Source: Zygnema circumcarinatum SAG 698-1b (taxonomy: Eukaryota; Plantae; Zygnematophyceae). Taken from it: a stretch of DNA of 64,000 nt. The position numbers and the translations under genes are program-made. Below, piece by piece: positions 28,815 through 44,914 of this stretch. The stretch is from the NCBI GenBank assembly GCA_037447605.1, contig CM074807.1:186001-250000 (forward strand). Direction: 5' to 3'. The notes beneath the pieces are model-generated. The model was not told the DNA's origin and ran no database searches. It saw only the letters and a program-made list of their open reading frames with translations. Position 1 is the first letter of the stretch, and the number at the start of each line of letters is the position of its first letter.

Positions 28815-30503
28815 TAAAAACTGATTTTGTTTGGTTTTTCTTTCGTTTGACGAGAATCAAGCCAGGCAGGAGGTCCTTAGCGACTGCTTATCATCGGGCT
28901 TCTGAGTTCACTGCCAGCTCGCCTTTGGTCACCTTGTTCCGCTGCAGCACTAGCCAGCGCTCTCACTCTTTTTTCCTCCTTCTCGTTTCTTCCTCCCCCC
29001 CCCTCTGCCCATTCTCTCTCTCTCTGTGTGTGCTATCTGTCCCACTGTGACTGTGTCAGGCTCAAAAGGTCCTTTGCTGGAGCCCTCTCTTTTCTGAGTC
29101 TTCTAGACTGACCATGGGATTCCATGCGGGCTGCTTCGAACTTGTAGTTGCGTTCTTGGTAATTTTAATAACGAAGGTAAGTGAAATCGGGTTTTCTGAG
29201 AAAAGTTTCGATTTCCTGTGTATGAACTGAACCTGATCTGGGCCGAGCATCTTGTGCCATGAGTAGTCACTGTGGGTTGGAGCAGGAGCGGACAGACCAG
29301 GTGGCTGGCTCTGATTGAGCTCAGCAGACCATGTCCATAGGCAGGCGGCAAGTTTGGGAGTGATTGGCCTCTGGTTGATTATGCGGAGTACTGTTGGAAT
29401 TTGGTTTCAGACTTTGAAACAATACACTCTTGGAATCTCGAGTCTTACTTTCGCAAGTGAGCCATGGATTGCCGATGGGAATAACAGTAGATGTTGCGTC
29501 GTGCCGAAAAGTGAAGCTACCACAAACAAGCACTTCAATCAATACGTTGGCATCCTCTGCCACCCTCATGATGGATCACCCTTACCATGGATTCATCGGT
29601 GGAAATTCAGATCGCACTTATCAACGTATATTTTGGAATGAATTTATCACACATAACGTACACACAGTTGTTGACCTTTTTCTGTACTTTTAAGAAGGGC
29701 AAAGCCCAATTGCACAGCCATCGACAACATCCTGTACTGGAGGCATAAACCAGTTGGCCTTATCAGCGACCGATCTCTAGAAAGGAGCCAAAATTGCGAA
29801 CAAAACAATAATGAAATGTGAGAACATCTGCGCGTGAGTTCCTAGTGAACAGAAGCATCAAAGTGCTGCACGCCACACTGAAACCAACTGATGCTCGGCC
29901 TCGGCGACTCGCGGTGGCCTGCACTTGGACATGCCCGGCGACCACATCCACTGAACGAATGAGCACACAAGCCTGAGCAACCATATGTTTCCCACCCACC
30001 ATATCGTTGCTCGGGTTGAGTGCGTTCACCTTGGGAGGAACACTGACTGGACACTACAAGATAAAATTGTTGACCCATAGGACCTGTTGCTGTCCTACAC
30101 GACCACCTTGCCTTGAGTGACAGCAAACATTTTTTCCTATATGAAGCTTGCCATGACTTTCCAGTCATCCTCCCAGGCGCTGCCCTCTCCCTTCCCCCCC
30201 CCCCTCCCCCCCCCAACGATCTGTACAGAAAAGTGGGAGTCCAGAGGAGTGTTGAGGCTTGCTGTAAGCCACCTGTGATATGAGGCCGAAATGTTGGCCG
30301 GGCCTGCCAAGGGCTCGAGGTGGAAGCAGTGGAAATATAAGCGCCGGAGCACATTCAACAGCAGGCTAGAGGGCTAACCTGCTCTCAGCCACCCCCTCGA
30401 TCCTTCGTGGAACCGTCGTATGGGGTAGGGAGGGAGGACTGTCTCATACCCCTAATCCACAATGGTAAAGGGCGGGGAAGGTCATCATGGGCAGCAATCC
30501 TGG

Positions 30504-33500
30504 TCATCTTGATGAAGAATGAAGCTGGAGTTGCAATTCTACAGGGAGGGGCAGGGTAATGTTGTTCAGAGAATTTTTCAGATCTGAAGCATAAATCCGG
30601 CTCACCGCCCTTATTAGTTCCGGTGTATAGTGTTCCGCCAGCCTCTGCTCAGAGTGGGTTACGTGGTTGGTATTGCTTTCTGGTACAACAGGTAGAGCGA
30701 TTCCAGGAGAGCGCTTGGAAAGTACATCCAGCAGATGCTGAGCATCAGTTTCAATAGTTTCCAGATACCCTATGAGGTCATATTTGACTATATCCAGGCC
30801 ACAAAGGTCGGCCTGCGGCCGAATGTGTTCATCCATGGCATCCCGATAGCGCTCTACCATCTTCTCCGTGCGGTTAAGAAACTCGCTAAAGCTCATTCGC
30901 ACGTCTGGTTGACCTGAACCCGCAAAAGGAATGGGTTCTCCGAGCAACTTGAAGAAGGCATAGTTCCAATTGTAACTGTTACGCTGAGCCCCTCCAGCAA
31001 CACCCTTATCCAAATAGGCCGAAAGAACACGCGACCATGGATTCCGAACGAGAACAAACTTGAACACGTTTGGATTTGTCACAATCTTCAGTGCCTGAAG
31101 CTCGGTGAAGTTTAACCCCAGCTGTTTGAGACCACTTTTATCTGCTTTCCCAATCTCCCTCCCTTTCCCTCAATCAAACTAAGCTAAAATGAAATTAGAT
31201 GTGAACCTGTGCTAGCCTAATTGGCCTCTATTGTGCACCGTAAAGCAATTTGGGTGGGGTGAACATCTCCACCACGGTGGGTGCTTTGAAGTCCAACAGT
31301 AGGAGATTTGACTCTCCATACCATCGCACTTCAGAAGCCGATGACTTATTCAAATCAAACGCACCCATAAGAACTGAATACTTTCAAAACCAGCCCAAAA
31401 GCCATGTCTACACTCCTTTGTCCCCATTCACTGACTTGCAATTTACTTGTCCCCCTGCCCACTCACCTGGCTCATGAACGTCGAAAATGCGGTGTTTAGG
31501 GTAGTCTGCACCCTCCCACCTACTAAACAGTGTCAGTTTCGCAATAGCTCACTAACCCAATATGTCAGCAGGGTTGGTCGGTTCATGGCGACAAATCCCA
31601 CCTGGCAAACCCTCCAGTCGGCGCATCCAGAGGCGCCATGCCGTACAGGCCACCTTGGGTATGCTGCAATACAGCAATGAGTGTTTCTCTGCAAAGCATT
31701 CTCCGTTCCCAAAGATCAGCCACTACAAAGTGACAAGTAGCACGACTCATCTTTGCGCACGCCTCATTAATCAACGGCCTCCACTACTTGGAAGAGACGC
31801 AAATGTACTGCAATGTCTGCTCGCAATCTTCCCTCACCGTTCACGTAAGTCTGCATCGCCCATGGTTGGTTGATCACAATGTCGAGACGGGGCCCGTCTC
31901 GAAGTGCCACCTGTCGTACATATCTGCGAGTGGAACTTGCCTCAGCTCTTGCCATGATGAAATCGGCGGCACCTGACGGCTCAGCATGAATAAGTAGCCG
32001 AGTGGTGCTCAAGGCAATGAACTCTGCCAATTGCCGTCGTGCACATGCAACGAGTGGGAGGCGATGGCTGCCAATAGCGTACACCTGATCCTCTGTAAAA
32101 GCAGCCCTGGCGAGCCCTCCAGCACCTGCACACACTGCCTGCGGTGGCGGATGGACCTTGACTTGTCAAGGGCCCAACGGAGGGTGGAAAAAGTCCCAAC
32201 CAAAACCCTGCTTTGACCCAAGAATCCCCGTGCTATCTGAAAAGTAAGATTTTCCACATTGTGAAATATTAAAGATGTTGAACTGAGCATTTATGCTTTG
32301 GAGTCAAAAGACGTCTATAATGGCGGTTCGGAAGAAATAACACTACTGAGACAATAGCACGAATTCTATAATGTCCAAAAACCCTTTATTAAGGGAGTCT
32401 CATGCAAGGGGTGTTTCCGGCTCACCCTTAGACTTTTTGCAATATATTCGAGTGTCTGTGGTTTGCGATCTTGGTGTATTGTTTCCAAAACTTTTTGAAC
32501 AGCTGCTTGTGGTCCCCCACCAAGGAAAAAATGCACCGACGGGTCCTTCAAGACCTCGTGCACGATGGCTCGTACTGTAATGTTTACTTGAAAGGGCCAA
32601 TTGGATGACCAACGTCGATAATTTGATCTTTTGTTCACATGGTTCAAGCCACCGAGTCTGACACCCTGGTACTGTGACTTTCTCTTTCCATCGTCACTGC
32701 GACCCTGTACCTCTCCACTTCCTCCGGGCACTTCTTGCGTCCTTCTGCGACTTGTGAGGCCGGAATCAGCTGTGCTTGTGTGGGGCTGCCGGCGTCGTCG
32801 AGCCTGCGATGAAGGCACACCTACTCTGTATATTTTATCAGCGAAAGAACACAGGGGAGCTGGTGGTAGAGGCTCCTCCCAGGGCACGCCTGCCTGCAAG
32901 AGGACTCCCACATTGTTCGCCAGCTCTGACCAATCGAGGCCTGCCAGCATATTGAGAACTCCTGAAACAGGAGTGAGGCGGGTATAGCAGGCATTGAGAG
33001 ACTCCCTGAGCTTGCAGGCCTCGAGGCCGGAAACTAAGTTGCAGGGACGAGTGCTCTCATGTACATAGAGCCCCCGAGGAGGTAGCAATTCCATATCCTC
33101 TTCCTCAACCGTTCCTCTCGTGTCGTTCGTGTCAACGCACGTTTGCTCATCGCTGCTTGAAAGCCGCGCTCTTCTAGCCACTTCAAGCCATGGCTGCCAA
33201 GAGGGCCCTACCTCGAGTTTACCCGAGAGATCGTCCAGTACCTCAAACTCCCTATTTGCAAAGAGCTCCTGGAATTTTGTGGCAGGCAGCCATGGATCCG
33301 AGACCCAGACCACATGCAGGCGGAGGCCTGCACTGCGGGCGAGAGTTTCTGCAGTGCAAAGGCTCTGCAAGCGGCTGCCGAGCTCTCCCTGACACACTAG
33401 CAGAGCGCCCTCGCGCGGCTCGGAGGCTCCCACCTCGACCTGCTGGTAGGGAAGCAAAGTCATGGCGGCCATTCCGACAACGGTGACTATGATGGCTATA

Positions 33501-33595
33501 GTCAGCAGCCAGAGAAGAGCAGTACAGAGAGCAGATGCTCGCCTTGCAGCCACGACGCGCCATGAGGCGCTCCGCCGCAGGGCGGCCGCCTCCAT
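30504..33595 (-). CDS. Type II membrane protein: fucosyltransferase-like (GT-B) domain fused to carbohydrate sulfotransferase (Sulfotransfer_2) domain, paralog A, 5 exons
   Basis: N-terminal TM helix (ALCTALLWLLTIAIIVTVVG); GELGSRLQSL...LHVVW; LAEFIALSTTRLLIH; 5'-PSB motif LLYCSIPKVACTAWR (~31635-31680); 3'-PB motif FVLVRNPWSRVLSAYLDK; DEHIRPQADLCG..IVKYDLIGYLE. Confidence 0.85.
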
Positions 33596-33733
33596 GGCCT
33601 CCCCCCTCCCTGCGCTCCCTCGCCCTCCCTCGCCCAAACGCGGGGGCCTGCAGAGAAGATGCCGGCCGGGAATGGCTGTGGGTAGCGCTCGCATGGATGG
33701 CATGAGGCGTGCAACGCCAACATTGTACCGGTG

Positions 33734-33859
33734 TGTTGAACAAGGAACGATGGACATTGCACGTTGGACAAGGAACGTTGAACATTGCATGTTGAACATG
33801 GAATGCTGGACATTGCATGTTGAACATGGAACGTTGAACATTGCATGTTGAACATTGCC
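33734..33859. repeat. Nine 14-bp units (consensus YGTTGAACA[TTGCA/TGGAA]) in the divergent spacer between paralog A and STT3B
   Basis: tgttgaacaaggaa cgatggacattgca cgttggacaaggaa cgttgaacattgca tgttgaacatggaa tgctggacattgca tgttgaacatggaa cgttgaacattgca tgttgaacattgcc. Confidence 0.92.
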
Positions 33860-33999
33860 GTCCATCCATGCCCATGCTCCGCCGGACCGCCCGCGGCGAC
33901 GTTTAGGGCTTTTCCGGCTCAAGTCAAGCTCGTGTCTGTGCAGCAGAGGCAGCAGCAACAGGACGAGGGCGCCCCGCAGAGGAGGGGAGGCAGGCAGCC

Positions 34000-36900
34000 A
34001 TGGCTGCTGCTGCTGCGGCGCCGCTCGGCGCTCTGGCGAGCACGCTGGCGAGCCTCCGCCTGACCACAAAGCAGCAGGAGCTGCTTCTCCGCGTGGCCAC
34101 GCTCCTCCTCATCTACATTCTCGCCTTCGTCACTCGCCTCTTCTCTGTGCTGCGGTATGAGTCTGTCATCCACGAGTTTGACCCCTACTTCAACTACCGT
34201 ACCACTCTCTACCTCACAAAGAAGGGTCTGTATGAGTTCTGGAATTGGTTTGATCATGAAACCTGGTACCCTCTGGGCCGAATTATAGGGGGCACGCTCT
34301 ACCCGGGCCTCATGCTCACAGCTGCATTTGAACATTGGGTGCTCCACTTTTTGAGCCTCACGGTACACATTCGCGACGTGTGTGTGCTGACTCCCTGCTT
34401 TTTCGCATCCAACACCACCCTTGTAGCCTATTTCTTTGGAAAGGAGATTAGGGATTCAGGAACAGGGCTGATAGCGGCGGCATTTATAGCCATCTGCCCT
34501 GGTTACATTTCGCGATCAGTGGCTGGGTCTTACGACTATGAGGGTATAGCAATTTTCGCAATGCTGCTCACATTTTACCTCTTTGTCAAGGCAGTGAACA
34601 CTGGTTCCCTCGCATGGGCAGTGGCATCTGCCTTCACTTACTTTTACATGGCATCTTCATGGGGAGGGTACATCTTCATCATCAACCTCTTGCCCATCTA
34701 TGTGTTCGTGCTCCTGGTCACTGGGCGATACTCTGGGCGTCTATATGTGGCCTATAATACCCTGTACATTCTTGGCGCTTTAATGGCAATGCAAATCCGC
34801 TTCATCGGATTTCAACATGTGCAATCGGGAGAGCACATGGCGGCCTTGGGAGTGTTTTTGCTCATACAGGTCAGCATTCTCATTTGAATCCAGCTCAGAT
34901 TTTAGAAATACCAGACAAAGGGAGGCTGTGGGCCTATTCACCTGATCGCTTGGGGCGCAAATCAATACGCAGTCTATTGTTTTTCAAAGTTTTTAATGGA
35001 TCTTGGATCCTGTCAAAATTGAGCTTTCCTTCCTCACCTAGCACGGCAGCATGAGGATGTATGCACAGCCTAGGAAGTTGTGTTGCTTATTCTAACTACT
35101 AGTTAAGCGCCCCAGTTTCTGCACTTGCGCTTTAAATTTTCCAGACCCATAGTTTGCCAGACCAGGCTATTCTTTGTTCCTTTTCTTAACAGTATTCTCC
35201 TACTTGAATGGAAAACTCCGATATCAGTTGGCAAAGCAGAATAATACCCGCCTACACTTCCACAAGCTATGACGCACTGAACTTAAAGAAAAACTGAGCC
35301 CTTTGTAGGCTTGATCCATCTATATTTGTCGCCGTCCAAGTAGTTATTTGCTAATGTACTTTTGTGCCTCGCTGTGCTTTTGTACGTGTCATCATTTCCA
35401 GTTCGAGTTTCCTTACCCAATAGAGGTTTAAGGTGCTGTTGGCTTTCAATGACATACAATCGACTATTGTCAACACAATCGACTGAAGCGGGCGAGAGTT
35501 GCTAAAGAAATTGCATTAAATCCGACCATTGTCAGATGCTGGTGAACAGATGCTGATCAACTTCAGATGATGACTTTGCAGGTTTTCTTTTTTGTGGACT
35601 GGGTCAAGCATCAACTGGTTGATCCAAAGCTGTTTCGCGCTTTCTTGCGCGTTACAGTTATATCAGCTGTTGCTGTGGGAGGCTTGGGATTATTTGTGGG
35701 AATGGCCACCGGTAGGACCATCTCCCATACTCTTCATTCCCGCTTTAGTTGCTGAACCTGCCCTTTCTACTTCATGTTGTCTCTTGTTCTGAGAGTGAGT
35801 TCGAACGATTTGGTAGGATACATATCTCCTTGGAGTGGACGTTTCTACTCGCTGTTGGACCCCACCTATGCCAAGGACCATATTCCCATCATCGCATCCG
35901 TTTCAGAGCATCAGCCCACCACATGGAGCTCCTTCTTTTTTGACTTTCACATTCTGCTCCTGCTCTTTCCCGCAGGTCAGAGTCTCTGATGCTTCTCTTC
36001 TACCTCTTGATGACAGTTGCACGAAGCTAAAGAAAATTTTCAGAACCTCATGCGCAATTGCGAAATTCTTCTTCTTCGTCTTCTTCTTCTTCGTCTTTTT
36101 CATACTGACAAGTCAACTGCATGGTGCAGGGCTCTACTTTTGCTTTAAGCGTTTGAATGATGCAACAGTCTTCATTGTCATTTATGCTCTCACCAGCATG
36201 TACTTTGCGGGAGTGATGGTGCGGCTCGTTCTTGTGGCCACTCCGGCTCTCTGCCTTATGGGGGCCATTGCAACCTCAGCTTCCTTCAAGAATTTCTCCA
36301 CTCTTGCACGGGAGAAGTTTCCTGAGAAGGGTGCTACTAGATCGGGGGGTGCTGGTCGGGGCAATGCAAAGGTGCCCTTTCTATCATAAAGGTCATGCTG
36401 AGTTTTTCCTGATGCTTAAATATGGAATCGGAAGCCTTGGGGTTGTCTGTCAAGAGAGCTTTTGTATTACAACTGTTTTAGTTCTTTCAGGTTCCAACAA
36501 CCTAAAGAGCTCTGCTCGCTTATCATGGAAAGTCTGCTTAGTCTTGTATGTGTAGTGAGATGTTTTTGATACTCATAAGGAGCTTATTGTTCTAGGAAAC
36601 CGTCAACTAAAATCTCAGTTTACTGTGGTGGGGTGCATGCAGAGTACAGTGGAGCAACCTCTCCCGCTACAACGCGAGGGGGCAGCACTGCTGCTTCTTG
36701 GAGGGCTTTTCTGCCTTCTCAACTATACAGTTCACTGCACTTGGGTGACATCGGAAGCTTATTCCTCACCTTCCATTGTCCTTCAGGCACGGCAGAGCAA
36801 TGGAGATCGCATCATTTTCGATGACTTCCGTGAAGCTTATTTCTGGTTACGCCATAACACTGCTCCTGATGCAAAGGTGAGACAATCTATACTCTCTGAT

Positions 36901-38156
36901 TTGCATGTTGGGTCTCTCTCAAAGTCTCCATGGCTGGCTAAGGCAGTGCGGTGTAGTCAAAGTGGAGATCGGATACTATGGAGCACAGTGTGAAGAGGGT
37001 AAAGAGTGGTTCAACTGGGGATGGGACTGAGCTTCTTGATACTGAATAGGGGCAGAGAGAAAATGAAAATGGAGTGTGCAGGTGATGTCCTGGTGGGACT
37101 ATGGTTATCAGATCACAGCCATGGGCAACCGGACTGTGATTGTGGACAACAATACATGGAACAACACACACATTGCTGCAGTTGGCCGGGCAATGTCCAG
37201 CAGCGAAGAGAATGCTTATGAGATTATGCGCAGTCTGGATGTGGATTATGTGTTGGTAGTTTTTGGCGGAGTAACGGGGTACTCTTCCGATGATATCAAC
37301 AAGTGAGTGCTCTCTTTTAGACAGCTGGGTCAACTTGAGGAGCTGGTAGAAGCTTGATATGTGAGAGGCAACAGGAAAGAGGGTGTGAGGAGAGGGAGTT
37401 GCCGTAAATGCAACTTGTGTATGCACCTCTGACGGATTAGGGTTTTGGAACAGGTTTCTCTGGATGGTCAGGATTGGAGGAGGTGTGTTTCCGGACATCC
37501 GGGAGGCAGACTACTTAAACCAGGGTGATTATCGAGTCGATAAAGATGCTACACCGACTATGCTAAACTGTTTAATGTGAGTTGGAATTGGCGTGAGTCG
37601 ATGATGGCACAAGCTTTAGTCTGGTCTATGTTATGAAAACGGACTCTTTTTTGCCGAGGGGAGTGGAAATCTGGTGCTGCCAAAGCACTGAAATCTGACG
37701 CATGAACGCCGATTTCGTTACAAAGTTGGGCTGGAAGGGAATTGTTCTTTTGATTCAATGATCAAAGTTTGGTTTTAAGGGGGAGAGGCATGGTGGAATG
37801 ACGGAGCAGGTACAAGTTGTGCTATTACCGTTTCGGGGAGCTTTCTACAGAGTATGGCAAGCCCACAGGGTGAGAACTCTTTGTTTCTCCTTCTTTTCTT
37901 GCAGGGTCCCCCATGTTGATGGTGAAGGCTGCCTGAACTTTGGGCTTCTGTAGGGGCATCTAAGAGGCTGACTGCTATCTGCTTTGCTTTGCTATTTGCT
38001 TTGCTTTATGTTTGGTGGGTACTCAGGTGGGATCGCTCTCGTCAAGTGGAAATTGGCAAGAAGGACATCGAGTTGGAGTACGTAGAGGAGGCCTTCACAA
38101 CTGTGAACTGGATAGTTCGGATTTACCGGGTGAAACCACGTGATAACCGCTGGTAA
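34000..38156 (+). CDS. STT3B: Oligosaccharyltransferase catalytic subunit STT3B
   Basis: [100 protein letters not shown]; plant STT3B-type N-terminus ([10 protein letters not shown]) and C-terminal NRW*. Confidence 0.98.
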
Positions 38157-39083
38157 TGCGGAGGTTTCTTCAGCTCGTTCCAACAGGGAACACGTTGGTA
38201 CTCTTTCATTTCAGGCTGAGTCCTGGAGGAGGCTGTGACTATGTTTCGAGTCCACAAATTACATGGTGAAAGCAGAGACTATTGGCGGCAGCCGTACATG
38301 AGGTGACCTCCAAGGCATACGACCCTTCCCCTGGAAATCCTCTGTTAGAATCGAAAGGAAGGCCTTGGAAGGGGGCAGCTCGCACATGGAAAAGCAAGGC
38401 AGTTTGGTTCAGTTTCAGCCGCAGGCTGGAAGTCACCCTCCTCACACCCATTCTCTTGCAATTGCGGCACCCACCTCGTTTTCCGATAAGCATTCTCTCT
38501 GTGCCGTTGCTGTTGTAAGGTGAACATTTTTGCAATTAACGTAGTTTTTATGGTTTGTCCCTTTCAACTCCTTTTCTTTGGCAATGACTTCGCCCTAAGC
38601 GCTCTAATACCGAACAATCTCTACAACATTCTCAACTCAAAGCACAGAACTTGACTCTCTATGCAACGAACTGGCATGCCCATCACCTGTACATCGTCAG
38701 CCCCGTCAACCCATGTCAAATATCAGCATTGCATGCTGATGCCCCAGAATCTTCCACACCATTCGGCCCCAATCGCTGTGGAAACCACGAGTGCATCGGT
38801 CGCCGAAATCCGGCTAAGTTCGAAATCAGTTGCGCGTCGCCATCATAGACGCGAGCGCGCCCCATGTGACGTGACGGCCAAAAAGTTCGCGCACCAGCGC
38901 GTTCGCCTCAAAGGAGAGGGAGCGGCGGAGATTGTTTTGTCGGCGCTGACCCGCTCCGGAGGCGGCGGAGGGAGGGAGGGACGGGGAGATCTGAGGGAGT
39001 GGCATAGGGAGGGGGAGAGGGAGAGGGAAAGGGAGAGGGAGAGGACGAGGGGGAGGGGGAGGCCGCGGCGTCCCTCCCGTTGC

Positions 39084-40920
39084 ATGGCGCCGGCCGCCCT
39101 GCACACGCTGCTCCCCTCCTCTCCGTTTGCCGACGCAGGCGTCTTCTCGACCTCCCGTCGTGGCATCTGCAGGGAGCGGGGTGGGAGCGCAGGGAGGAGT
39201 TGCCGCGCCTGCGGAATTAGCAGCAGCAGCAGCAGCAGCAGCGGCAGGAATGGTGCCGTCGCAGGGGCGAGAGATTCTCCCACAGGCTGTCAGCTAGCGT
39301 CGAGCCAGGCGGATTCGATAGGAGTGCTGGGGGGTATGTCGCCTCGCGCCACCGTAGATTTCATGCGCAAGGTGATCGACGCTACGCCCGCGCGCTCTGA
39401 CTCCGAGCACCTTCCTATGCTCGTCTGCAGCGACCCGCGCATTGCCGGCTGCTGCACGCCGTTTGGCGGCTCATCCAATGGCCGGGCAGTGAAGGCGGAC
39501 ATGGCAGAAAGCGCAGTGGAGCTCTTCTTGGAGAACCGAAGGGTCTTGGAGCAGTCAGGAGCGCGGTGCATTGTGATGCCCTGCCACGTGGCGCACCTGT
39601 GGTTCGATCAGATTGCAGATGGATGCTCCGTTCCGTTTCTGCACATAGCAGATGCGTTGGTGGAGGAGCTACAGGCGGAGAACCTGCAGCCTTTGGAGGC
39701 GGGGGGCCGACCTAAAGTGGGGCTGCTGGCCTCTGAAGCGACTCTGCATGCCGGGTTCTACCAAGATCGCCTCCGGAATGCTGTAAGAGTTCACTCTGCC
39801 TTTTACTTTTCTTGGATGGGTCGTCAGTGTATTGGGGATTAATCTCATCTAAAGGCGCTTCACTGAAACTCGGATCATAGCTGGCCGCCTGCATCTGTAC
39901 AACGCAGACAGGTTATGGAGTAAAGAGGCACTCAAAAACCGCCGAAAGCAGGAGGAGCTTCCTTCTCAATGCTGTTCGTTTTAAGGGCATTATGTTTTTT
40001 ATGTAGATCCGTTTATTGAACATATCTACTGACTGATCCAGAAGGGTTTGAGGCTTAGAAATGGTCGTCCGTTACTAGGAAAGAGTTCAATATGGTAGGG
40101 TGGATCGAACAAAGGGCCACTCGAGAGAACTACATAGCAACTCCTGATTAATAGTCGTTGCTGAGTACAGTGCTATGCGTTTGACAAGGCCCACTTCCTT
40201 GGAAGATTGATCAATGTTTTTGGAGAGCCCAGTGGAATGATCTTTCCCTTGACCGTTGGAGACAAATCAGTGCTTACGAAAAGGGCTTGAGAATTTTTCT
40301 CGATCTTATTCTGATTGCACTTATAGCTGGCAATTCTGCCAAGCAGCAAGAAAATTCCTGAGGGGTTTTTACCTCCTGTAGCGAAGGTTTATTCACGGAA
40401 GGTTTTTTCTATTGAACAGCAGATCGAGCACACAGGACACATTTCGTAATTCTCTAGAAGGTGCTGCACCTAGTAACTACGTTTTTAATGTTAAGGGCTG
40501 TAAGATGTCAGATATGTACGGATGTCTTCATGTGGTCATGTCATTTGTCACAGCATTTTCCTGATCAATGAGCTACTGTGTGAGCTCCTCTGCTGGCAGG
40601 GTTTTGAGGTGGTGATACCCGACAAGGCCACCATGGAGCACGCAGTGGTTCCTGGTGTTGAGGCTCTCCAACGGCGAGACATGGAGGGCGCACAGAACCT
40701 GCTCCGTATTGCAGCACAAGTATTGCTGGTCAATGCTGTGAACCGAGTTGTCCTTGCTTGCCACGACATGTCCTCCGCATTCTCTCCCCAAGATCCCACT
40801 CTCTTGCGCTGCATCGACCCCATGGATGCTCTTGCTCGCCAAACAGTTCGGTGGGCGCAGCAGGTGCGGAAGAATTCCGCAGCTTCTGCCACCCCGCTTG
40901 AGTCCGATGTTGGCAGATGA
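39084..40920 (+). CDS. PLP-independent aspartate/glutamate racemase family protein, probable plastid transit peptide; exons 39084-39782, 40600-40920
   Basis: IGVLGGMSPRATVDF, CIVMPCHVAH, VPFLHI, KVGLLASEATLHAGFYQ, GFEVVIPDKATMEH, VVLACHDM, IDPMDALAR. Confidence 0.92.
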
Positions 40921-41850
40921 CATGCGGTCGAGATATGGAGCACCCTTGTTTTTGTGGGGCCCTATGCACAGCTGCAAGCTGTCCTGAAGGGGCACACTCA
41001 GCCTCCCATTGAGGCGACAGGTGGGTCCTGGCCCGTCTCCTCTCATCAGCACCTTGACACACAGAACGCGCTCATAGGCGGAAACCTGTGGAAGGGCAGC
41101 GGATGCAGCACTGCCTGCTGCATACTGAGCACGACAGCACAGCACAGCACAGCTGCAGTAGATGTCTTTAAGGTATTTACGTGGGTTCAAAGTAAAAGCT
41201 CCGCATTTTTATAGCATGCTTAAGGTCGCGTGGAAGGAATGCCAATTATGGCTAAGAGCACGTTTTTTTCAGTCATCTGTACAACGCAGGAAATTGCGGT
41301 CTTAGCTACCGAAGTCCTATAGGAGGCAGCAATTCGAGGTCTATACTGTGAGGTGCAAGCTCCTGAAATGTGCATATAGGGCTGTTTTTTTTTTTTTTGG
41401 TACTTGGGATGTCTGTAGTTTCTCATTGGGACATGACTCATCGTCGACTATCGACAGCTCCGCTAATGAAGGGCTCGAGAGCCGCAGAAACAAAGCTGTC
41501 ACCCAATATCTGCGTTTTTCCCTGGGTATGTCAAATTTGTTTTTGTCTGAGAATGACTGTGTCACTCTGGCAGTCGCAATAAGGCCAAGGCTCAATCAGA
41601 AGTATTACCAAGCTTCATTCTCAGATCGCCAGTATGCGAGGTGCCCCAAAGAGCCCCAACATATGTCCTCTGTTTTCACTGAAGAAAAAACGTTCCAAAG
41701 TATCTTTCACAATATATCCAGTTCGCAATTCCTGCCGACGAGTTTCCACGATGCTCTATTCGTCACAGACGATGATAACCCTCTCCTTAGTAATCATCAA
41801 CAGTGTCGCAAAAGAGCACCAGAAAGAGTCTGGTTGGAATGCACAGGGAT

Positions 41851-44768
41851 TTAAGCTTGGAACGAAATGCCGTTCAAAGGAATCTCCACATCCATAGAGT
41901 AGGCGAGCCGAACGGCTTCAATGAGTTCAGGCGTATAATACGAGGCGAAGAGTGCTGAGGAGTTCGTGGGATGAGCAAACAGCCCTTGGGAAGGAAGTGC
42001 TGCTGCTCCCTTTCCTACGTGACGGAACACTACTCGACTATCTTCCTGCATTCTCTCAAACCGTCCAACAAAATGGTACTTGAGAATGTGCAGACCGCAA
42101 AGGTCCGCCTGCGGGGCAATGTGATTCTCTACCTTCTTGCGGGAATCACGTATGACATTCCCAGTCAGCCGCACGAACTCTGGGAAGCTCAGCAGAGAGT
42201 CGCCCAGAGTTGCAATGTGCAGGTCTCCAAAGAAAACATTGTTCCAGAATGTGCGATTGCGCTGATGCCCACCTGCCACGTGCTTGTCTAGATAAGCTGA
42301 CAGGAGGCGAGTCCATGGACTACGAACGAAAGTGAACAGAAATGTCTTCGGGTTTGTAAGAATGCGTGCTGCTTCGCCTTCTGAAAAATCTTGACCCAAC
42401 ACTTTCAATCCACTCCTGCCTGTTTCCTCCCCTCCCAAACAAGTCAGTTTTGCCTTTACATGGTCATCATGCTTGCATTACTGCCTATGGCCCAGAGGCT
42501 GTAGCTTTCACCCATAGTACTTATACACACGCTCACACTTTCAGGCAGCGAAGGGAAAACGAGCACAGAGCAGGTATCACCAACAGAGGGAAAGGAAGGA
42601 GAATTCTCTCACCACGATCATGAACCTCCTCGGTGGCGGATAAATTGAGCTCTGCCGCCACCCATGGAGTCCTATGAGCCATGAGCAATGATTGCAGGTG
42701 GACTTTTTTGGCAATGGAATGTAAAATCAGAGTGGCGTTTCTTAGGTCGCATAGTGCAGCTGAAATAAAGGAAGGTTTTTTTACTGTTCCACCTGCCATG
42801 CCCTGCAGACGGCGCATCCAAAGCCGCCATGTTGTGCAGGCGACTTTGGGTATACTACAGTAAAGCAGAGAGCGCTCTTCTGAAAAGAGACAATCCCAAG
42901 TATCCCCACCAAGCAGTGTTCAATTATCTGCTAATTTGACTGCACTTTCTGCATAATTTCCCTCTTTACGTATGGCTTCCAGGCTCGCCTCTTCACTGAT
43001 AACTGCCTGCGACTGCTATTGCACATAGAGGTAGTCGATAACCAATTTGATTTATATTGAAAACAAAATGTAGATTGGGTATTTTGGAATGGCATATTCA
43101 TAGAAAATATTGAGCTCACCATCAACGTACAGTTGCTGCGCCCAGCGCTGTTGTATCACAAGGGGCGGCAACTTCTTGTCACAGAATGCCTCCCTGCGCT
43201 TAAACGGATGACCAAATTTCTCAGCCTGTCCGACGATAAAATCCACAACTCCAGACGGGAAGCCGTGTATTAGGGTTGTGGTCTGACTAAGGAGAAGATA
43301 CTCTGCTAAATCATGCTGTGCACACGTTACCAGCTTGAGCCTAAAAGGACCCTGTTCACGGGCTTGCGATTCGGAAAAAGGCAAAGTATGGCCCATGAGA
43401 GGGTTGAAGGCTCGGCACAGCTCCTGCCCCTCCCGCAGCGGGTCAAAGTGAGGCCCAAATTTGCCTGTTTTTGAAAGCTCTGCGTTCCAACTTTCCCCTC
43501 TGCTTAAAACCAAAGGACACCATGGCACCCAGAAAGTGTCAGTTGAGTTCGTTGGTCCTCACGTGTCTTCGATTATTTTCAACTCTTCTTTTTGTTAGTG
43601 AGAAGTGTGTACGCGTATAACTATGTGTGTATGCCAATTTATGTCTGAATGCATGGCACTGTTGGTTCCCTCAGTCAGTCACCGTTGATATCACCACGAT
43701 CACCCTCACCTTCTGCTCAGGAGAAGAGAAACTGAGTTGTAGAGGCTTCCGCTCATGGTGGAACGTATCCATGACGCCCTGCACTGCCAGTCCGGGACTG
43801 CCTCCGAGGAAAAAGTCGGAAGAGGGGTCCCTAAGCAGTTCCATGAGCATGATACGGCTGCTCAAATTGGTTTGCATTCCCCAGTGCGTACTAAAGCCCC
43901 AGCAGCTCTTGCTCAATCGGTTCCAATCTCTTTCCGGAAGTCGGGGGGGCATCATTTGCAGTCTCTCACCGTTAGAGTCGTCTTCCCCATCAAGCTCTGT
44001 TGAGTCCACACTGCTCACAGAGCCCAAGCAAGCAGATACAAGGAGCTCCGGCGTGACTTGTGGCACGCCTGCCTGCAAGATCACTCCTTTAGAACGTCTG
44101 AGCCGTGCCATATCCACTCCTGCCGCCAGTCTCTGCACCTCTTCAGACGGCCGCAATCGCTGATAGCAGCCACGCAGCTGCTCTGCAAGCTCACAGCCTT
44201 GCAGCTTAGCCTCTGCCCGGCGGAGTTGACATGGGGCTACTGCTTGACTGACAAAGAGACTTGGAGGGGCTTTCACATTGCTGGGGTGGATGTCAGCGCA
44301 CTTTGACTGAGAACTGCTACTGGCGTTCCAGGCTACTACTGCTTGGCGCCAGGATAGCCACTCCAGGCTAAGCTGAAATTTACCGTCCAGGTCATCTAGA
44401 GCTTCAAACATTGAACTTTTAGAAAACAGTTCCTCAAAATTGGTCGCAGGAAGCCATCCATCTGACCTCCAGACCACCACAAGAGGAATCTCTGCTGCTC
44501 TAGTGAATGCCTCGGCTGCGCAGATGGAATACAAGCGGCTTCCCAGGTCACCCCCACACAGAAGCACAGCAGAGCCCCTAAGCGACTCCTTCCCTCGGCG
44601 TACAACCTCCTCCCAACGCCCTCGGCCCTCTCCCGCAGGCGAGCTTCTGAGGCGGAGATGCAGGAAGCAGCCGCAGAGAAGCGCAGCGAAGAGGGCAGCG
44701 ATGCAGCGCCGCTTGCTGCAGCCCCTCACCCGTCCCCCTCCCCCCCCTCCCCGCATGCGCATGCGCAT
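41851..44768 (-). CDS. Fucosyltransferase-like + carbohydrate sulfotransferase fusion, paralog B, 5 exons
   Basis: TM CIAALFAALLCGCFL; GGDLGSRLYSI...LVVVW; LAEYLLLSQTTTLIHG; LLYCSIPKVACTTWRLWMRR (~42810-42870); FTFVRSPWTRLLSAYLDK; NHIAPQADLCG; same intron positions as paralog A. Confidence 0.85.
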
Positions 44769-44832
44769 CTGCAGCCACTGCAGCCTCCGCTTCCCGTGGG
44801 AGCGTGCGCTTCTGTTGTGTGTGGCATGAGAA

Positions 44833-44914
44833 TTAGGGTTAGGGTTAGGGTTAGGGTTAGGGTTAGGGTTAGGGTTAGGGTTAGAGCCAGGCGATTAGGG
44901 TTACGAAGTTAGGG
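44833..44914 (+). repeat. Interstitial telomere-like (TTAGGG)8 plus degenerate copies in a divergent promoter
   Basis: Eight perfect TTAGGG units at 44833-44880, followed by ttaga, ttagggtta and ttaggg. Confidence 0.95.

Follow-up and report, generated by a model that had tools for sequence, protein, structure and literature searches.

Two paralogous genes in a 64,000-nucleotide window of the genome of Zygnema circumcarinatum SAG 698-1b (contig CM074807.1, positions 186,001 to 250,000; all positions below are those of the window) encode fusion proteins, in which an intact carbohydrate-type sulfotransferase dependent on 3'-phosphoadenosine 5'-phosphosulfate (PAPS) carries, on the side nearer the membrane, a domain with the GT-B fold of fucosyltransferases. 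In gene A (30504..33595, minus strand, coding for about 744 amino acid residues; stop codon at 30504-30506) all four splice joints, with GT-AG ends, were found in the RNA runs X1, X3 and X4. Gene B (41851..44768, minus strand, about 685 residues; stop codon at 41851-41853) is predicted from its homology to gene A, its GT-AG ends and its matching intron phases. Judged by its sequences, this architecture comprises an N-terminal domain (N-domain) family without annotation, found only fused to polysaccharide-modifying enzymes. On balance, it seems probable, with modest confidence, that a degenerate fucosyltransferase-fold domain recognises or positions the glycan acceptor for the fused Golgi carbohydrate sulfotransferase.

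An earlier note on this DNA, made from the letters alone, had proposed that the two genes bracket an STT3 gene and form with it a module for the sulfation of glycans, and that their products may be bifunctional. New results here are the pair of paralogs, the complete splicing evidence for gene A and the test of the STT3 idea. The earlier note knew of no characterisation of such a fusion, and our literature search likewise found no paper on a fusion of a fucosyltransferase-fold domain with a sulfotransferase.

Exons, transcripts and the sulfotransferase half

The exons of gene A lie at 33595-32426, 32138-31838, 31688-31602, 31505-31467 and 31141-30507, and those predicted for gene B at 44768-43710, 43423-43120, 42879-42793, 42651-42613 and 42419-41854 (minus strand in both cases). 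All introns have GT..AG ends, the intron phases are 0, 1, 1 and 1 in both genes, and the lengths of the internal exons are 301, 87 and 39 nt in gene A and 304, 87 and 39 nt in gene B. The identical intron positions which the earlier note had read from the two paralogs were thus confirmed in position as well as in phase. When pieces of gene A were compared with the locus of gene B using tblastn, four colinear blocks were obtained, with E values of 4e-50 for exon 1, 1e-19 for exon 2, 9e-18 for exon 3 and 5e-45 for exon 5, as expected of paralogs. Relatives from other organisms share the position of the first intron, since their exon-1 open reading frames (ORFs) stop at the homologous residue.

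The RNA evidence consisted of four runs, the contigs (unitigs) of which were placed on the region 30400-34100. The splice joints of gene A (32138/32426, 31688/31838, 31505/31602 and 31141/31467) all occur in spliced contigs of X1, X3 and X4, which represent three studies, and their CT..AC ends on the plus strand correspond to GT..AG on the strand of the gene. A single contig of 1533 nt from X1 spans exons 1, 2, 3 and 4 joined to one another, and the joint between exons 4 and 5 was found in a separate contig of 57 nt, one side of which is 27 nt long. Since exon 3 of the 1533-nt contig carries the sulfotransferase motif IPKVACT, the fucosyltransferase-like region and the sulfotransferase lie on one gene A mRNA, and the fusion proposed in the earlier note, as opposed to two domains on separate transcripts, is upheld for this gene by contigs from three runs. 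Because a transcript contig of gene A extends about 207 nt past position 30400, the 3' untranslated region should be at least about 300 nt long. The RNA reads covered the region of gene A only; the exon model of gene B rests on sequence and homology.

Some contigs of gene A retain introns: intron 4 (31142-31466) was kept in some contigs of all three runs and intron 1 (32139-32425) in some contigs of X3 and X4, at a depth below that of the exons in both cases, which points to unspliced pre-mRNA, to retained introns or to DNA present in the libraries. The remaining run, X2 (2025, with another organism label), gave one identical contig of 235 nt at 33361-33595, of low depth, the end of which coincides exactly with the predicted ATG of gene A; it may come from the same species under the other label, from contamination or from coincidence.

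The last exons of both genes matched the Pfam family Sulfotransfer_2 (PF03567), with 72.1 bits (E 1e-19) for gene A and 61 bits (E 2.4e-16) for gene B, the curated gathering cutoff of this family being 22 bits. The 5'-phosphosulfate-binding motif IPKVACT was located in the exon sequence at 31642..31662 (minus strand, exon 3) in gene A and at 42833..42853 (minus strand) in gene B, and the 3'-phosphate-binding motif in exon 5 at 31005..31049 (minus strand, VRNPWSRVLSAYLDK) in gene A and at 42283..42327 (minus strand, VRSPWTRLLSAYLDK) in gene B. The latter has the form VR(N/S)PW(S/T)R(V/L)LSAYLDK in both genes, and the Lys of the 5'-phosphosulfate-binding motif and the Arg and Ser of the 3'-phosphate-binding motif are present; exon 3 is 79% identical between the two genes. 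With Pfam scores above the cutoff and both PAPS motifs in both genes, the intact Sulfotransfer_2 domain described in the earlier note was borne out. On these profile matches the two proteins are members of PF03567, and this family is as far as their placement with CHST8-14/HNK-1ST extends. In full-length homologs the domain covers positions 2-247 of the 252 of the profile, with 69-106 bits. A search of the sulfotransferase domain against PDB sequences found no relative, and its nearest clusters in the Atlas were bacterial Sulfotransfer_2 proteins.

The N-domain and its family

Both predicted proteins begin with a short basic tail followed by one hydrophobic segment (mean Kyte-Doolittle hydropathy of 2.63 in A and 2.08 in B). 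In gene A, the best 19-residue window, with the value of 2.63, marks a putative signal-anchor, or type II transmembrane segment, at 33476..33532 (minus strand). The products of A and B are predicted to be anchored in the membrane, most likely that of the Golgi, in type II orientation. The N-terminal anchor and every motif quoted in the earlier note were found in both genes.

The N-domain consists of about 450 residues and is encoded in gene A at 31838..33388 (minus strand), that is, by exon 1 from the GELGSRL loop onward plus exon 2; in gene A, about 100 residues inserted after strand one of the C-terminal half are disordered. No Pfam family matched the N-domain up to E 10, with O-FucT, NodZ, FUT8_N_cat, Glyco_transf_11 and XG_FTase included in the search, and the N-domain profile gave no match among PDB sequences up to the same E value. 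The fold was approached through a natural homolog, P0002, the N-domain of which (residues 60-650, 34-46% identical to the window proteins) was modelled by AlphaFold from an alignment of 18 rows as a stand-in for the whole domain. The core of the model has a predicted local distance difference test (pLDDT) value of about 90, and an insert of 160 residues is disordered.

In an exhaustive comparison of this model with the PDB using VIA-align, the top six matches were all fucosyltransferases, namely NodZ (Z 14.3), POFUT2 (13.5 and 13.4), FUT8 (13.4), Arabidopsis FUT1 (13.3) and POFUT1 (12.9), with 231-262 aligned residues, and the next match, to GT9 heptosyltransferases, followed at Z 8.9. The same six fucosyltransferases led the comparison when a model of gene B exon 1, a truncated domain, was used (Z 5.0-6.9). 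Foldseek placed POFUT1 at the top of its PDB matches, with a weak E value of about 0.03, the shape search of the Atlas returned clusters of NodZ, O-FucT, FUT8 and GT11, and a language-model search with gene B exon 1 returned clusters of the fucosyltransferase clan only. The VIA-align, Foldseek and Atlas searches with these predicted models support the GT-B fold of fucosyltransferase type that the earlier note had assigned to the N-terminal region. The identity between A and B is 42-45% in the ordered parts of the N-domain and 45% in the sulfotransferase domain, and the N-domain is therefore under constraint.

In fucosyltransferases such as NodZ, FUT8 and the POFUT enzymes, motif I reads HxRxGD with an essential Arg, and motif II is acidic. 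In the P0002 model, strand one of the C-terminal Rossmann half, at the motif I position, reads GGVLIQGGAP. The corresponding strand-loop is VGVLLQAGVP in gene A (32882..32911, minus strand; placed by the secondary structure of the model and the family alignment) and KGVILQAGVP in gene B (44061..44090, minus strand; placed by the sequence and the exon 1 model, which has a strand at residues 177-182), with Arg replaced by Gln in both genes. The second strand of this half, FFLGG(G/S)P, has Gly where fucosyltransferases have the Asp of motif II. In the Closterium clade, D, E, S or T occupies the position of the motif I Arg, and the motif I and motif II positions vary across the family. Because of the Gln and Gly at these two positions, canonical use of GDP-fucose is doubtful.

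Other parts of the N-domain are conserved. A segment resembling motif III, LAE(F/Y)..LS..LIH..PSG..DF, occurs in A and B; in gene A it lies in exon 2 (31956..32030, minus strand) as LAEF..LS..LIH..PSG..DFI, and it is kept in gene B and in the homologs P0002, L007 and L008. In the GDLGSR loop of the N-domain the G and the R are invariant, as are the W and D in VVWxSD, one F and two Cys, and an H..R.P motif is mostly conserved across the family.

The family was collected by searching 1.84 billion protein representatives with a profile of the exon 1 sequences of A and B, which yielded 15 relatives. The named relatives are all from Closterium species, and the remainder are from transcriptome, Logan or ENA contigs; the window proteins had no close match among the 15 relatives or the annotated Closterium proteins. 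Eight relatives are longer than 700 residues, seven of which carry Sulfotransfer_2 and one PC-Esterase. P0002, from an independent transcriptome, is a complete fused ORF of 837 residues with the same architecture as A and B. In the Logan contig L007 (411-3170), exons 1, 2, 3 and 5 of a compact homolog with much shorter introns are colinear within 3.2 kb, and the fusion is thus present in a more AT-rich organism. The survey of the architecture beyond the window that the earlier note had called for therefore showed that the fusion recurs in other organisms (P0002, the Closterium relatives and L007).

Three relatives that appeared to be stand-alone N-domain proteins (P0001, P0003 and P0004) were rejected as such, being exon-1 ORFs with further exons downstream on the same contig. 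The exceptional PC-Esterase protein, P0015, is a partial model of 943 residues from Closterium sp. Naga37s-1; its N-domain, with GDLGSRL and LAELFALS, is joined through a Ser/Pro-rich linker to PC-Esterase (a TBL-like acyl-esterase), with no sulfotransferase, and it could represent either a genuine alternative fusion or two gene models merged into one. Word-based searches with the gene A exon 1 ORF, the P0002 N-domain and the P0002 sulfotransferase domain returned nothing, the query itself or one fragment, with no named relatives for either P0002 domain, and a scan of metagenomes for related loci found none.

Proposed role of the fusion

If the N-domain has lost the canonical Arg and Asp for binding GDP-fucose, it would not serve as a classical fucosyltransferase, and it may instead act as a recognition or positioning module that brings a glycan acceptor to the site of the sulfotransferase. 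The likely substrate would be the extracellular polysaccharide of charophyte and zygnematophyte algae, which in charophytes is rich in fucose, galactose and glucuronate and variably sulfated (PMC10762512). A and B are, on their predicted domains, good candidates for sulfating the secreted slime.

Among known systems, A and B resemble the Golgi Sulfotransfer_2 enzymes (CHST8-14/HNK-1ST, HS2ST and UST) in the predicted type II anchor, the match to PF03567 and the intact binding motifs, PKVACT on the 5'-phosphosulfate side and RxPWxRxxSAYLDK on the 3'-phosphate side; whereas the known members have a short stem, A and B have a GT-B domain of 450 residues in its place. With the GT-B fucosyltransferases, that is, NodZ and FUT8 (GT23), POFUT1 (GT65), POFUT2 (GT68), Arabidopsis FUT1 (GT37) and GT11, the N-domain shares the fold of two Rossmann halves, the glycine-rich loop after the first strand and the motif-III-like hydrophobic strand with a loop containing Ser after it. 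It differs from them in having no detectable sequence similarity, in carrying, by position, Gln for the essential Arg of motif I and Gly for the Asp of motif II, in the long disordered insert of its C-terminal half and in being always fused to a modifying enzyme.

The heparan sulfate N-deacetylase/N-sulfotransferase (NDST) is a single type II polypeptide of the Golgi with a glycan-processing domain ahead of its sulfotransferase, and both domains are proven to be active. The analogy with A and B is one of architecture only, since the N-terminal domain of NDST is a deacetylase and its sulfotransferase belongs to Sulfotransfer_1. In the brown alga Nemacystus decipiens, a gene fusion of a sulfotransferase with an alpha/beta hydrolase was reported in the context of sulfated fucan synthesis, with a call for further examination (PMC6418280); it is likewise an algal combination of a sulfotransferase with an enzyme-like domain, but the partner domain and the lineage are different.

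Several points weigh against a role of the N-domain in acceptor recognition. The donor-site motifs were mapped by secondary-structure position in a predicted homolog model and from the fucosyltransferase motifs of the literature rather than by residue-level superposition, and the invariant residues of the N-domain, together with its H..R.P motif, could form a non-canonical active site. The splicing and expression of gene B are predictions, and the enzyme activity, substrate and localisation proposed for both proteins are read from their sequences.

A rather unlikely alternative is that the N-domain is catalytically active as a glycosyltransferase, by means of a donor site of non-canonical type, and adds a sugar that the fused domain then sulfates. 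The fold belongs to a superfamily of enzymes, the domain is conserved as much as the sulfotransferase domain, an invariant R and D are found in its N-terminal half, the motif-III-like segment is kept, and its partners are polysaccharide-modifying domains only. However, Gln and Gly stand in place of the Arg of motif I and the Asp of motif II, with D, E, S or T at the former position in the Closterium clade, and searches of Pfam and the PDB, even at E 10, detected no sequence similarity to any glycosyltransferase family. For these substitutions, and for the variability of the two positions in the family, the bifunctional enzyme suggested in the earlier note is doubtful. With a similarly low probability, the N-domain may either work as a transferase of non-canonical type or be dedicated to reading glycans, such that one polypeptide builds or selects a residue of the fucose-rich extracellular polysaccharide and sulfates it.

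We consider it very unlikely that the N-domain, like the POFUT enzymes, docks a folded module of a secreted protein, on which the sulfotransferase modifies an O-glycan or a tyrosine. The best structural matches include POFUT1 and POFUT2, enzymes that recognise folded modules of proteins, and plant tyrosylprotein sulfotransferase is also a member of the Sulfotransfer_2 family. Nevertheless, NodZ, FUT8 and Arabidopsis FUT1, which act on glycans, scored equally well, and the motifs PKVACT and RxPxxRxxSAY of A and B resemble those of carbohydrate sulfotransferases.

The STT3 neighbour and the wider context

The region 30504-44768 contains four genes: gene A (minus strand), STT3 (plus strand), an Asp/Glu racemase gene (plus strand) and gene B (minus strand). 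STT3, a multi-exon gene at 34000..38156, encodes the catalytic subunit of oligosaccharyltransferase; its exon 1 matched PF02516 (E 7.5e-84), and STT3-PglB_core was found by Pfam on a later exon. The racemase gene lies at about 38661-40920, between STT3 and gene B, and matched PF01177 on two exons (E 3.9e-20 and 1.5e-07). Genes A and B thus flank a block of two genes, and of the bracketing of STT3 by the paralogs, as the earlier note had described it, the adjacency of gene A stands, whereas that of gene B does not.

The ATGs of gene A (33595) and STT3 (34000) are arranged head-to-head at a distance of 405 bp, in good agreement with the approximately 400 bp first estimated. The gene A contigs reach 33531, 33754 and 33883, and those of STT3 begin at 33995, 33967 and 33923; since the transcript contigs come within about 40-110 bp of each other, the divergent promoter and 5' leader region common to the two genes (33596..33999, no strand assigned) is real. 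Within this region lies a tandem array (33734-33858) of 14/28-bp units, with about 8.9 copies of CATG-rich units like GTTGAACATTGCAC, which forms part of those gene A contigs that extend further in the 5' direction. Upstream ATGs associated with the array, one of them out of frame at 33875, would affect the translation of gene A transcripts with the long leader.

We give little credence to the idea of a common promoter that co-regulates gene A and STT3, with the enzymes sulfating N-glycans. The distance of 405 bp between the ATGs, the proximity of the 5' transcript ends and the occurrence of contigs of both genes in the same three runs are compatible with it, but contig depth can neither rank nor correlate the genes and so cannot show co-regulation. 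In addition, the racemase gene separates gene B from STT3; gene B faces instead a putative plus-strand ORF, the ATG of which (44988) is 220 bp from that of gene B. Four Closterium paralog loci with 10-kb flanks had no STT3 neighbour, these being paralog loci with the orthologous regions not located. Furthermore, STT3 acts in the endoplasmic reticulum, and Sulfotransfer_2 enzymes act in the Golgi. The module with N-glycosylation put forward in the earlier note thus comes down to the adjacency of gene A, and the divergent promoter would reflect ordinary gene packing with no functional module.

Hardly credible is an artefact in which two neighbouring genes were joined by read-through or by mis-assembly of contigs: although the runs consist of short contigs, the short one bearing the exon 4-5 joint among them, exon 3 with the PAPS-binding Lys is in the same 1533-nt contig as exons 1 and 2, the frame runs without a break through every phase of A and B, a complete fused ORF occurs in the independent transcriptome of P0002, and the exons are colinear on L007.

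Beyond gene B, the putative plus-strand ORF from 44988 had no match in Pfam, and a simple repeat of dinucleotide type (44830-44912), translating as RVRVRV..., lies between it and the ATG of gene B.

According to a review, carbohydrate sulfotransferases were lost in the lineage of freshwater and land plants and are absent from Chara (PMC8307928). Our literature search found no enzyme for the sulfation of extracellular polysaccharides in streptophyte algae, and A and B, the former of which is expressed, would be concrete candidates for this sulfation. The N-domain family offers a testable example of a glycosyltransferase fold that was possibly reused for substrate recognition. If the less likely reading holds, in which the N-domain is a non-canonical transferase or is dedicated to reading glycans, the family would also show that the machinery of carbohydrate-type sulfation survived and diversified in streptophyte algae of fresh water, against the published view of its loss before the move to fresh water and land (PMC8307928).

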